Of a DNA stretch of 64,000 nucleotides, positions 38,970 to 41,614 are shown one piece after another. The position numbers were made by a program, and so were the translations under genes. Each line of letters begins with the position of its first letter. Position 1 is the stretch's first letter. Origin of the DNA: Macrostomum lignano (lineage: Eukaryota); NCBI GenBank assembly GCA_002269645.1, contig NIVC01000527.1:186001-250000 (forward strand). Direction: 5' to 3'. The notes under the pieces were generated by a model. It did not search any database, was not told where the DNA came from, and saw only the letters and a list, made by a program, of their open reading frames with translations.

Positions 38970-41275
38970 TCAAAGTTGCAATTTATTACCAGCAGATCTA
39001 ACGTATCCATGGTAACAAGCGAAATCCATCAGGCTGTCAGCCAGCATGCCGCAGTACTCATCCGACACGGTGCCGCACTGCTTCGATCGAACATAATCCG
39101 GATTCTCCAGCTGGATGCAGTCCGCTTTGGTGCTGCTGTAATGATGTACGGTGTAGGCGCCGGAGTAATAGTTCGCCCCAGGGCCCGGGCTGGGCCTTCG
39201 GGCGCTCGGCACAACGGGCACGCTGCGACTCTCCAGGTAGGCGCCCAGGCTGTGCGGACCGGAGATCAGCTCGCTTGGCGACTGGCCCGACCTGGAGCAC
39301 AGGCACTTCAGAGTGCACTGCTGGGCCGTGTAGTGACCGGAGTCCAGCAGGGAGGCCTTGATGCCGTAGCCAAGCTCCAGCCACTGCTCGGGATGGTCCT
39401 GGGAGAGAGTGAGACCCACGTTAACGAGACAGACAGACAGACAGATAGACAGACAGACAGACAGACAGACAGACAGACAGACAGACAGACAGACAGACAG
39501 ACAGACGGACAGACAGACAGACAGACAGACAGACAGACAGACAGACAGACAGACAGACAGACAGACAGACAGACAGACACACACACAGACAGACACTCAC
39601 GCTCAGCTCTCACCTGTCCGTGAAAGTCCAGAAGCAGCGGGTGGCCCCCACCCACTCCCTCATTGTCGTCGGCGGCGGCGGCCAGGCGGCTAGCGGCCTC
39701 GAGAGCCGCCCGCACGCGGCCGTGATAGGCTCGGTAGGCGGTCACCGAGGCGGCGGCGCCGGGCTGGCAGGCGCGGGCCTCGCTGCGGTTCATGTTCACC
39801 TTGAGCCGGTCCACATTGTTGACAATGAGGAAGGCCTCCAGGCCGTAGCGATCTGTAAGCAGCTGGTGAACCCGCCTGGTCAGCGGGGCCACCAGATCGT
39901 CGTTGCAGGTGACCACCCCGGGCTGCTGGGGGTCCCGGTCAGGCATGTCCGCCGGCCGGAGGCTGCCATCGTGCGGGCAGGTCAGCACCAGCGGGCAGTT
40001 CCCCGGCGCGTAGCTGACGGCCGCCTCCGCTTCTGCACAGCCGCGGGCCTCCTGCAATCGGGACAGAGGGAGAGCTGTAGGCTCATTGATTCGTAGATAG
40101 ATGAGCAGGTAGATAGATGGGCATCCAGGTAGATAGATGGGCAGGTAGATAGATGAGCAGGTAGATAGATGGGCATGTATTGTAGATAGATATGCAGGTA
40201 GATAGATGAGCACGTAGATAGATTTGCAGGTAGATAGATGGGCAGGTAGATGAATGGGCAAGGTAGATGGATGGGCAGGTAGATAGATGGGCAGGTAGAT
40301 AGATGAGCAGGTAGACAGATGGGAAGGTAGATAGATGGGCAGGTGGATGAATGGGCAAGGTAGATGGATGGGCAGGTAGATAGATGGGAAGGTAGATAGA
40401 TGAGCAGGTAGACAGATGGGCAGGTAGATAGATGAGCACGTAGATAGATTTGCAGGTAGATGGATGGGCAGGTAGATAGATGAGCAGGTAGACAGATGGA
40501 AAGGTAGATAGATGGGCAGGTAGATGAATGGGCAAGGTAGATGGATGGGCAGGTAGATAGATGGGAAGGTAGATAGATGAGCAGGTAGACAGATGGGAAG
40601 GTAGATAGATGGGCAGGTAGATGAATAGGCAAGGTAGATGGATGGGTAGGTAGATAGATGGGCAGGTAGATAGATGAGCAGGTAGACAGATGGGAAGGTA
40701 GATAGATGGGCAGGTAGATGAATGGGCAAGGTAGATGGATGGGCAGGTAGATAGAGAGGCAGGGTAGATACATTGGAAGGCAGATAGATGCGTAGGGTAG
40801 ATAGATAGGCAGACAGATAGATGGGCAGGTAGACAGATGGGAAGGTAGATAGATGGGCAGGTAGATGAATGGGCAAGTAGATGGATGGGCAGGTAGATAG
40901 ATGGGAAGGTAGATAGATGAGCAGGTAGACAGAAGGGAAGGTAGATACATGTAGATGGGCAGGTAGATGAATGGGCAAGGTAGATGGATGGGCAGGTAGA
41001 TAGATGGGCAGGTAGACAGATGGGAAGGTAGATAGATGGGCAGGTAGATAGAGAGGCAGGGTAGATACATTGGAAGGCAGATAGATGCGTAGGGTAGATA
41101 GATAGGCAGACAGATAGATGGGCAGGTAGATATATAAGCAGGCAGATGGAAGGATTTGGACGGTGGTAGAAGCATAGACTGTTCCTGCTAGTGAACTGCG
41201 CCGAGCCGGGACAGGCAATGAAAAGCAGGCCAACAATGCAACAATTATTAAACAGTCGTTAAAAATAAAAGACAT
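38970..41275 (-). CDS. N-formylglutamate amidohydrolase-like Zn-dependent hydrolase
   Basis: Secure exons 40051-39614 and 39398-38970 (phase 0): [86 protein letters not shown]. The first exon near 41160-41300 is ambiguous (possible signal peptide [21 protein letters not shown]). Confidence 0.72.
39425..39596. repeat. (GACA)n microsatellite in the hydrolase intron
   Basis: Direct inspection. Confidence 0.95.
40095..41140. repeat. GATA/GGTA-based compound repeat (GATAGATGGGCAGGTA) with about 298-bp internal duplication
   Basis: Marker agagaggcagggtagatacattggaagg at about 40753 and about 41050. Confidence 0.92.
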
Positions 41276-41614
41276 CACAATACCTGCTGTACTTTGTCAT
41301 GAAAATCTGCGCGTATTAGAAAAAAAACAGCTGATGTGTCTAACTCAAAACCAAAGGAAGGTCCGGGGTTCGAAGCGCCGCGGGAAAATTGCATGCAAAT
41401 TGTAAAAATGGAAAAAATATACCCATCTGTAGTAAAACTGCCAATACAAACGACGAAACGAGACAAGTGCTGTTAACCTCTGCATAAATTCATAAATTTC
41501 TAATATTTTGCGTCAAAGCTTTTAAATAGAGGGAAAAATTGGGCGAATGGAAGAGAAGAAAATTCAGGTAATAAAATAAAATTTTATACTCGACTTTCGC
41601 TCAGTTTGAATCGC

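Follow-up and report, generated by a model that had tools for sequence, protein, structure and literature searches.

A 64,000-nucleotide stretch of the genome of the flatworm Macrostomum lignano (assembly GCA_002269645.1, contig NIVC01000527.1, positions 186,001 to 250,000 of the forward strand; hereafter the window, whose own coordinates are used throughout) carries a single copy of an intron-containing gene for a protein of the N-formylglutamate amidohydrolase (FGase) type, located at 38970..40051 on the minus strand. The explanation that best accounts for the whole of this locus, to which a probability of roughly 0.72 is attached, is that the gene was inherited within eukaryotes as part of a family patchily retained across Metazoa, Fungi and Amoebozoa, that the flatworm did not acquire it from bacteria, and that it encodes an active amidohydrolase whose mRNA would obtain its 5' end from a spliced leader (SL). 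On this view the gene is nuclear and expressed, and is an ordinary, uncharacterised member of its family; GenBank already lists it as a hypothetical protein, and it adds a new and divergent member to an established superfamily.

Gene model and superfamily assignment

The coding sequence (CDS) is divided between two exons on the minus strand. Exon A (39614..40051; 438 nt, phase 0, residues 1-146) lies between the acceptor ttgcag|GAG and the donor CAG|gtgaga, and its product contains EARGC, PHDG, PDRD and LLLDFHGQ in that order. It is followed by an intron of 215 nt (39399..39613, donor gtgaga of the GT[GA]AG class, acceptor ...ctcccag), after which exon B (38970..39398) continues the LLLDFHGQ motif across the junction and supplies VPS, YYSGAYT, IQLE and KLQL before a TGA stop codon at 38972-38970. 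Spliced in phase 0, the two exons give 288 amino acids (aa) without internal stops. The first-pass annotation, which was made from the DNA letters alone, had described two clean spliced exons with the expected motifs and an intron-containing gene in an animal genome, and both descriptions hold: all of the listed motifs occur in the same order, and the 215-nt GT..AG intron belongs to a gene flanked by those for the mitochondrial calcium uniporter (MCU) and a PAP2-family phosphatase.

The gene also appears on a second scaffold. Over positions 34941-43841 the window shares 99% identity with the terminal part of NIVC01002143.1 from the same assembly, where the gene bears the annotation 'hypothetical protein BOX15_Mlig019304g2, partial' (P0001). 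The scaffold copy lacks 1 bp in a GCC repeat (the GCCGCCGCC run) at about 39675 in window coordinates and is consequently frameshifted, and both exons are otherwise identical between the two copies, that of the window being intact. Despite the frameshift, the P0001 protein reads through the same exon junction as the window gene, indicating that a transcript-informed gene model uses the 215-nt intron; the deletion itself may be a true allele or an error of the long-read assembly. The GC content at third codon positions (GC3) of the CDS is 0.80, as compared with 0.72-0.83 for neighbouring exons. The MCU and PAP2 neighbours, the host-like GC3 and the matching scaffold together indicate that the gene sits in an animal chromosome and is not a contaminant.

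The similarity to the Pfam FGase family (PF05013) that the first-pass annotation had proposed to look for was recovered in part, as a weak match over residues 20-95 (18.8 bits, E 0.0019) that does not reach the gathering cutoff of 28.9, while a search of the protein against NCBIfam gave no match. A phmmer search of 1.84 billion representative sequences returned 1277 matches at E<=1e-3, including 652 at E<=1e-10, with end-to-end alignments at 30-41% identity, a degree of similarity well beyond coincidence, and PF05013 was found at E<=0.01 in 35 of 40 aligned relatives (best E 2.8e-13). Two other searches were less productive: a word-indexed homologue search with the window protein recovered the GenBank copy alone, and a profile search with untrimmed sequences gave 19 matches, probably due to signal-peptide and low-complexity words crowding the candidates, and trimmed domains were used instead. 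On these sequence comparisons, the window protein is a fringe member of PF05013, linked to the family via intermediates.

Structure prediction leads in the same direction. An AlphaFold2 model built on the alignment of relatives reached a pLDDT of 92.2 and a pTM of 0.91, and its top Foldseek matches in the Protein Data Bank (PDB) were the FGase structures 2q7s (Ralstonia eutropha) and 2odf (Atu2144), with E 2.8e-8 to 2.4e-5 and a probability of 1.0, followed by the Rv3717/Ami1 peptidoglycan amidases, carboxypeptidase T and the poly-gamma-glutamate hydrolase PghP. The model thereby supports an FGase-like (carboxypeptidase-like Zn-hydrolase) fold, in agreement with the earlier assignment. Three results count against it, namely the PF05013 score below the gathering cutoff, the insignificant outcome of sequence and profile searches against the PDB (2q7s at E 0.21), and TM-scores to the FGase structures of only 0.47-0.54.

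Comparison with characterised systems delimits how far the resemblance extends. The HutG/PF05013 enzymes share with the window protein the PHxG and (D/N)xH motifs in addition to the best structural match (E 2.8e-8), but 2q7s is only 14% identical to it; moreover, the subfamily to which the window protein belongs has an extra ELGY...VPS...GGY module, and most of its members carry secretion signals. Amidase_3 proteins (Rv3717/Ami1), PghP and the M14 carboxypeptidases resemble it in fold and in the order of active-site elements, although they match it less well in structure (E 1e-4 to 1e-2) and display no detectable sequence similarity.

Placement among eukaryotic and bacterial relatives

Named bacterial members of the family are found in Gemmatimonadota, Bacteroidota, Verrucomicrobiota, Chloroflexota, Planctomycetota and others, and often contain Big_1/Big_2 domains or a type IX secretion system (T9SS) sorting tail. 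Named vertebrate members come from ten frog species and the lungfish Protopterus, and named invertebrate members from the annelids Paralvinella and Lamellibrachia, the tardigrade Paramacrobiotus, the copepod Eurytemora, the brachiopod Lingula, the coral Desmophyllum, Hydra and the ctenophore Mnemiopsis; the fungus Basidiobolus and the amoebozoan Vannella add further eukaryotic sequences, and M. lignano itself has a second family gene, BOX15_Mlig020394. The eukaryotic clade thus spans at least eight animal phyla, including vertebrates, and this occurrence across animals, fungi and an amoebozoan bears out one of the two origins first suggested for the gene, that of a patchily retained family.

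Several lines of evidence group the window protein with eukaryotic sequences. In a neighbour-joining (NJ) tree of 50 named taxa, 27 of them bacteria, all named eukaryotes together with the window protein were separated from the bacteria in 177/200 bootstraps, whereas the window protein joined bacteria in 2/200. Its score of 198.8 bits against a profile built from six named eukaryotic sequences is 48 bits above the 151.2 bits obtained with one built from 24 named bacteria. The glutamine of the HGQ motif (Q146), which is present in the window protein, is shared by 19/21 eukaryotes and by 1/27 bacteria; the loop after ELGY, 23 aa long in the window protein, measures 22-24 aa in 20/21 eukaryotes and 27-30 aa in bacteria. 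When the labelled sequences are ranked by pairwise score, the first nine all come from eukaryotes, and the M. lignano paralogue leads the list.

This paralogue (BOX15_Mlig020394g1/g2; PAA92266.1, UniProt A0A267H1Y0), automatically named N-formylglutamate amidohydrolase, belongs to the same eukaryotic clade, matches the window protein at 130 bits and 38% identity, and has a nearly identical HGQ.HPEQW.ELGY segment, but differs in having a signal peptide, a Cys-rich insert, an ATG of its own and two introns at other positions. Other animal homologues, including those of Bufo bufo (LOC121009228), Protopterus (LOC122792476), Hydra (LOC101237240), Paramacrobiotus (LOC129588925), Mnemiopsis, Lingula, Desmophyllum, Lamellibrachia and Eurytemora, fall in the same clade and share the conserved residues and the HGQ and loop-length signatures; they are 33-35% identical to the window protein, most of them are secreted and carry an insert with 4-6 Cys, and none has been functionally characterised.

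These data bear directly on the alternative that the gene passed from bacteria into the flatworm lineage and later gained its intron. The first-pass annotation had called the gene bacterial in type and offered such a flatworm-specific acquisition as one origin. The abundance of the family in the bacterial phyla listed above speaks for this scenario, and so do the absence of the eukaryote-typical Cys-rich insert, the unique intron position and the NJ neighbour P0179, a bacterial metagenomic protein discussed below. However, the bootstrap counts, the 48-bit advantage of the eukaryotic profile, the eukaryote-type HGQ motif and loop length, the best labelled match to a flatworm paralogue, the long-branch attraction suggested by the 61-bit score of P0179, the host-like GC3 and the animal flanking genes all argue against it, and recent transfer into the flatworm lineage is accordingly regarded as highly improbable. 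The description as bacterial in type is not supported, and in the NJ tree the protein lies within a eukaryotic clade that includes vertebrates, the kind of placement that the annotation had itself set against horizontal transfer.

Certain features of the comparisons nevertheless weaken the case for eukaryotic inheritance. The best bacteria come close in pairwise score (102.7 bits versus 106-118), the trees are exclusively NJ and hence distance-based, and the interior of the eukaryotic clade is not resolved. A larger NJ tree of 183 sequences is weakly supported, with the window protein and the six named eukaryotes grouped without a GTDB bacterium in 23/50 replicates, and in this tree P0179 is drawn beside the window protein as its sister. 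P0179 derives from a 2046-bp Logan contig (SRR30952584) with 74% GC, on which a short FGase-like gene lies between lpxC and the gene for a DUF6531 protein. Its pairwise score with the window protein is only 61 bits, which points to long-branch attraction as the cause of the placement, and on the grounds of this score and of its bacterial character (74% GC, lpxC neighbour) it was rejected as the true sister of the window protein. It still groups with the eukaryotic clade in 166/200 NJ replicates after removal of the window protein, and P0179 may be either a long-branch artefact or a bacterial lineage near the eukaryotic clade.

Intron positions also detract from a simple vertical account. The position in the window gene is unique, being common neither to the paralogue nor to the tardigrade gene, and the CDS has no introns in Bufo bufo (LR991674.1) and Hydra vulgaris (CP147943.1) and almost none in Paralvinella. 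The coral and tardigrade genes both have a phase-1 intron in the Gly codon that precedes the xPH strand, within an alignment uncertainty of +-1 residue, suggesting that this intron arose before cnidarians and bilaterians diverged. Common intron positions were considered as proof of vertical descent and set aside, as the window intron is unique and only the coral and tardigrade positions match. The intron data are compatible with old vertical descent accompanied by intron turnover, and the comparison yields no support for a flatworm-specific transfer.

A deeper transfer may be envisaged, in which a single ancient acquisition from bacteria, or transfers between eukaryotes, gave rise to the whole eukaryotic clade and introns were gained separately in each lineage. 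Such a history would fit the explanation favoured here for the locus itself, and the patchy distribution could reflect transfer as well as loss. It would accommodate the intronless or nearly intronless genes of Bufo bufo, Hydra and Paralvinella, the different intron positions of the window gene, the paralogue and the tardigrade gene, and a eukaryotic subtree that does not follow the species tree except for frogs and lungfish. On the other hand, the coral/tardigrade intron suggests great age, frogs and lungfish do form a clade, and poor resolution is to be expected at 35-40% identity. An ancient bacterial origin of the eukaryotic clade retains some weight because of the limits of NJ, the close scores, P0179 and the non-common introns, and we judge this deeper transfer to be rather unlikely while giving it more credence than a flatworm-specific one.

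Conserved residues and predicted chemistry

Among columns conserved at 80% or more in 183 relatives, 39 of 48 are kept in the window protein, including H27, G29, D51, R82, K84, N88, R89, D142, H144, H148, E154, Q242 and E244. Four of these (H27, D51, H144 and E244) show little or no variation across the relatives, and H27 and H144 align with the PHSG and LHS motifs of 2q7s. M14 carboxypeptidases, such as carboxypeptidase A, have active-site residues in the order H...D/E...R...NR...H...Y...E, an arrangement that the window protein mirrors. By analogy, H27, D51 and H144 are presumed to be the metal ligands, E244 in IQLE would act as the general base, and R82 together with N88-R89 would bind the substrate carboxylate. 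Because the catalytic candidates are kept and the fold is confidently predicted, the protein is predicted to be an active amidohydrolase that recognises a free carboxylate; most likely it would be a metal-dependent enzyme cutting an amide beside that carboxylate, as in an N-acyl or gamma-glutamyl amino-acid-type substrate. We infer both the metal use and the substrate class.

The principal challenge to this prediction is that the locus might be a decaying or non-functional paralogue, still transcribed but no longer giving rise to an active enzyme. Eight conserved positions have changed (T54V, P73A, L80V, D86N, G138P, G205S, G227A and G234S), among them D86N at a site where Asp is 96% conserved, which speaks against an intact enzyme, as does the 1-bp frameshift of the NIVC01002143.1 copy; the missing start codon, a low-complexity insertion before DFHGQ and a long branch, with no more than 38% identity to any other sequence, would likewise fit decay. 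Conversely, deep divergence has left a frame of 288 codons intact over both exons, no invariant residue has been lost, the fold is confidently predicted, and the frameshift, which falls in a GCC repeat of an assembly made from long reads, may be an assembly error. Decay is therefore considered quite improbable, and the prediction of an active enzyme is preferred.

Identity with HutG (EC 3.5.1.68) is unlikely, because there is no hut context at the window or beside bacterial relatives: hut genes were found neither next to the window gene, whose neighbours are MCU and PAP2, nor among the recurrent neighbours at 24 bacterial loci. These 24 bacterial neighbourhoods revealed no conserved operon, with only mild recurrence of FG-GAP proteins (6/89 flanking open reading frames (ORFs) scanned) and of gamma-glutamyltranspeptidase (4/24 loci), the latter adjacency being a weak hint of gamma-glutamyl chemistry. 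By analogy with related enzymes, candidate substrates would include N-acyl amino acids, gamma-glutamyl compounds and muropeptide-like amides. In the library searched, no paper on animal members of the family was found.

The 5' end and the surroundings of the gene

Exon A encodes no Met ahead of the essential H27, and the start codon must therefore lie outside this exon. In flatworms, use of the AUG of a spliced leader as the initiator has been described. Approximately 30% of M. lignano genes are SL trans-spliced, with a 35-nt leader (CGGTCTCTTACTGCGAAGACTCAATTTATTGCATG) that ends in ATG and a trans-splice acceptor motif of [T/C]TNCAG (PMC8629364). Exon A begins with GAGGCCCGC at 40051, immediately after a polypyrimidine tract and acceptor (...ctctccctctgtcccgaTTGCAG, 40052..40074, minus strand), which is the proposed site of SL addition, and its acceptor TTGCAG fits this motif. 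Joined at 40051, the leader ATG would be in frame, and the GenBank CDS is 5'-partial, beginning within exon A, 21 nt from the start of that exon, and including none farther upstream. The proposed mechanism is trans-splicing of the SL at 40052|40051 with the leader AUG as the initiator, which would give a 289-aa protein starting MEARGC and predicted to be intracellular. One consideration tempers this proposal: an SL ATG would be in frame by chance in one case out of three.

The competing possibility is that this copy is secreted, with a cis-spliced first exon, starting at ATG 41275 or farther upstream, supplying a signal peptide. Exon A starts about 14 aa before the PG motif, as does the mature form of secreted relatives, and a 24-aa candidate signal-peptide ORF at 41204..41275 (minus strand) is in frame with it and has a cleavage-like V-P-A end. 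Consensus GT[AG]AG donors are found at about two-thirds of M. lignano introns, and the ~35% that do not match (PMC8629364) leave room for an unconventional splice site. Even so, all eight GT dinucleotides in the 120 nt that follow ATG 41275 have a pyrimidine at +3 and none belongs to a GT[AG]AG, leaving the ORF with no plausible donor and making it an unlikely exon; hydrophobic peptides are readily encoded by T-rich DNA, the exon is missing from the transcript-based GenBank model, and the disulfide-rich insert of secreted members is absent. The signal-peptide exon suggested in the first-pass annotation is thus disfavoured for want of a usable splice donor, and the extracellular role suggested with it is likewise not supported for this copy, though most eukaryotic relatives do have signal peptides. 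A cryptic signal-peptide exon and a secreted product are considered unlikely, and SL trans-splicing with a non-secreted product, which is favoured over them, is held at roughly even odds.

Upstream of exon A, a 16-bp minisatellite (GTAGATAGATGGGCAG) at 40093..41147, with ~64 copies and a 97-bp higher-order period, is non-coding and fills the outron or intron. It is stop-free in every minus-strand frame and so extends exon A into spurious ORFs of 400-650 aa, and the open frame from ATG 41275 to exon A is therefore trivial. For this reason, and since a polypyrimidine tract and TTGCAG precede the start of homology, the read-through ORF 41278..39308 (signal peptide, 370 aa of repeat and enzyme) was rejected. 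Only two GT[AG]AG motifs (41983 and 42005) occur between the MCU stop codon and exon A. An inverted repeat resembling a miniature inverted-repeat transposable element (MITE) is present at 41655-41675 / 41980-42000, with 21-nt arms that are 95% complementary and 304 nt apart, and with wider imperfect complementarity; the donor motif at 41983 lies inside its distal arm and that at 42005 just outside. A mini-exon ATGATGGGCCACTCAGCACATTTGCGT|GTAAGC (42032-42006) is in frame and has a consensus donor, but, lying beside and partly in the MITE-like inverted repeat, it was judged to be a chance occurrence, while ATG 41300 with a donor at 41284 is in the wrong frame.

The relatives offer a wider perspective on secretion. 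Most eukaryotic members possess a signal peptide and an insert with 4-6 Cys after PHGG, the insert region being 21-37 aa in most eukaryotes versus 13 aa in the window protein, in which the Cys-rich insert is absent. Reduced forms also exist elsewhere: the Hydra and Eurytemora homologues have no signal peptide and a reduced 2-Cys insert, and that of Basidiobolus has no Cys-rich insert. A tentative reading, for which the odds are somewhat less than even, is that the eukaryotic clade consists mostly of secreted, disulfide-stabilised Zn-amidohydrolases acting on a non-histidine substrate, and that the M. lignano copy would be a derivative that stays inside the cell, having lost both signal peptide and start codon, and is translated from the SL AUG instead.

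The last exons of the MCU gene (42814-43059 and 43485-43652, minus strand), ~2.7 kb upstream of the FGase-like gene and in the same orientation, encode the WDIMEP motif and match PF04678 at E 2.6e-25. Downstream, a PAP2-family phosphatase exon occupies 36984..37313 (minus strand), according to the annotation on the 99%-identical scaffold. An AATAAA poly(A) signal at 38982..38987 (minus strand) falls within the last CDS codons, and another is present near 38879. The bulk of the 215-nt intron is a (GTCT)n microsatellite at 39427-39595, equivalent to (AGAC)42 on the other strand, and the same tetranucleotide arrays recur near 2100-2380 and 25600-26050, as detected by BLAST. Further tandem arrays are located around and inside the PAP2-like gene, at 36500-36981 (17/50-bp), 37308-37912 (15/135-bp) and 38543-38763 (35/69-bp), and the 15-bp array gives rise to an artefactual 279-aa ORF (MTHDLITNYL...). 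No tRNA genes, and no Rfam families at the gathering threshold, were found in the window (1-64000).

These results remove a candidate bacteria-to-animal gene transfer and turn an apparent bacterial gene into a representative of a eukaryotic branch of the FGase superfamily, which is wide but patchy in animals and includes frog and lungfish genes. Since none of the proteins of this branch has been characterised, a biochemical assignment would allow hundreds of entries now listed as 'uncharacterized protein' to be annotated at once. The locus may, in addition, exemplify a flatworm mRNA whose sole start codon comes from a spliced leader, an idea that is cheaply testable in M. lignano, for which RNA-seq, transgenesis and RNAi are on offer.

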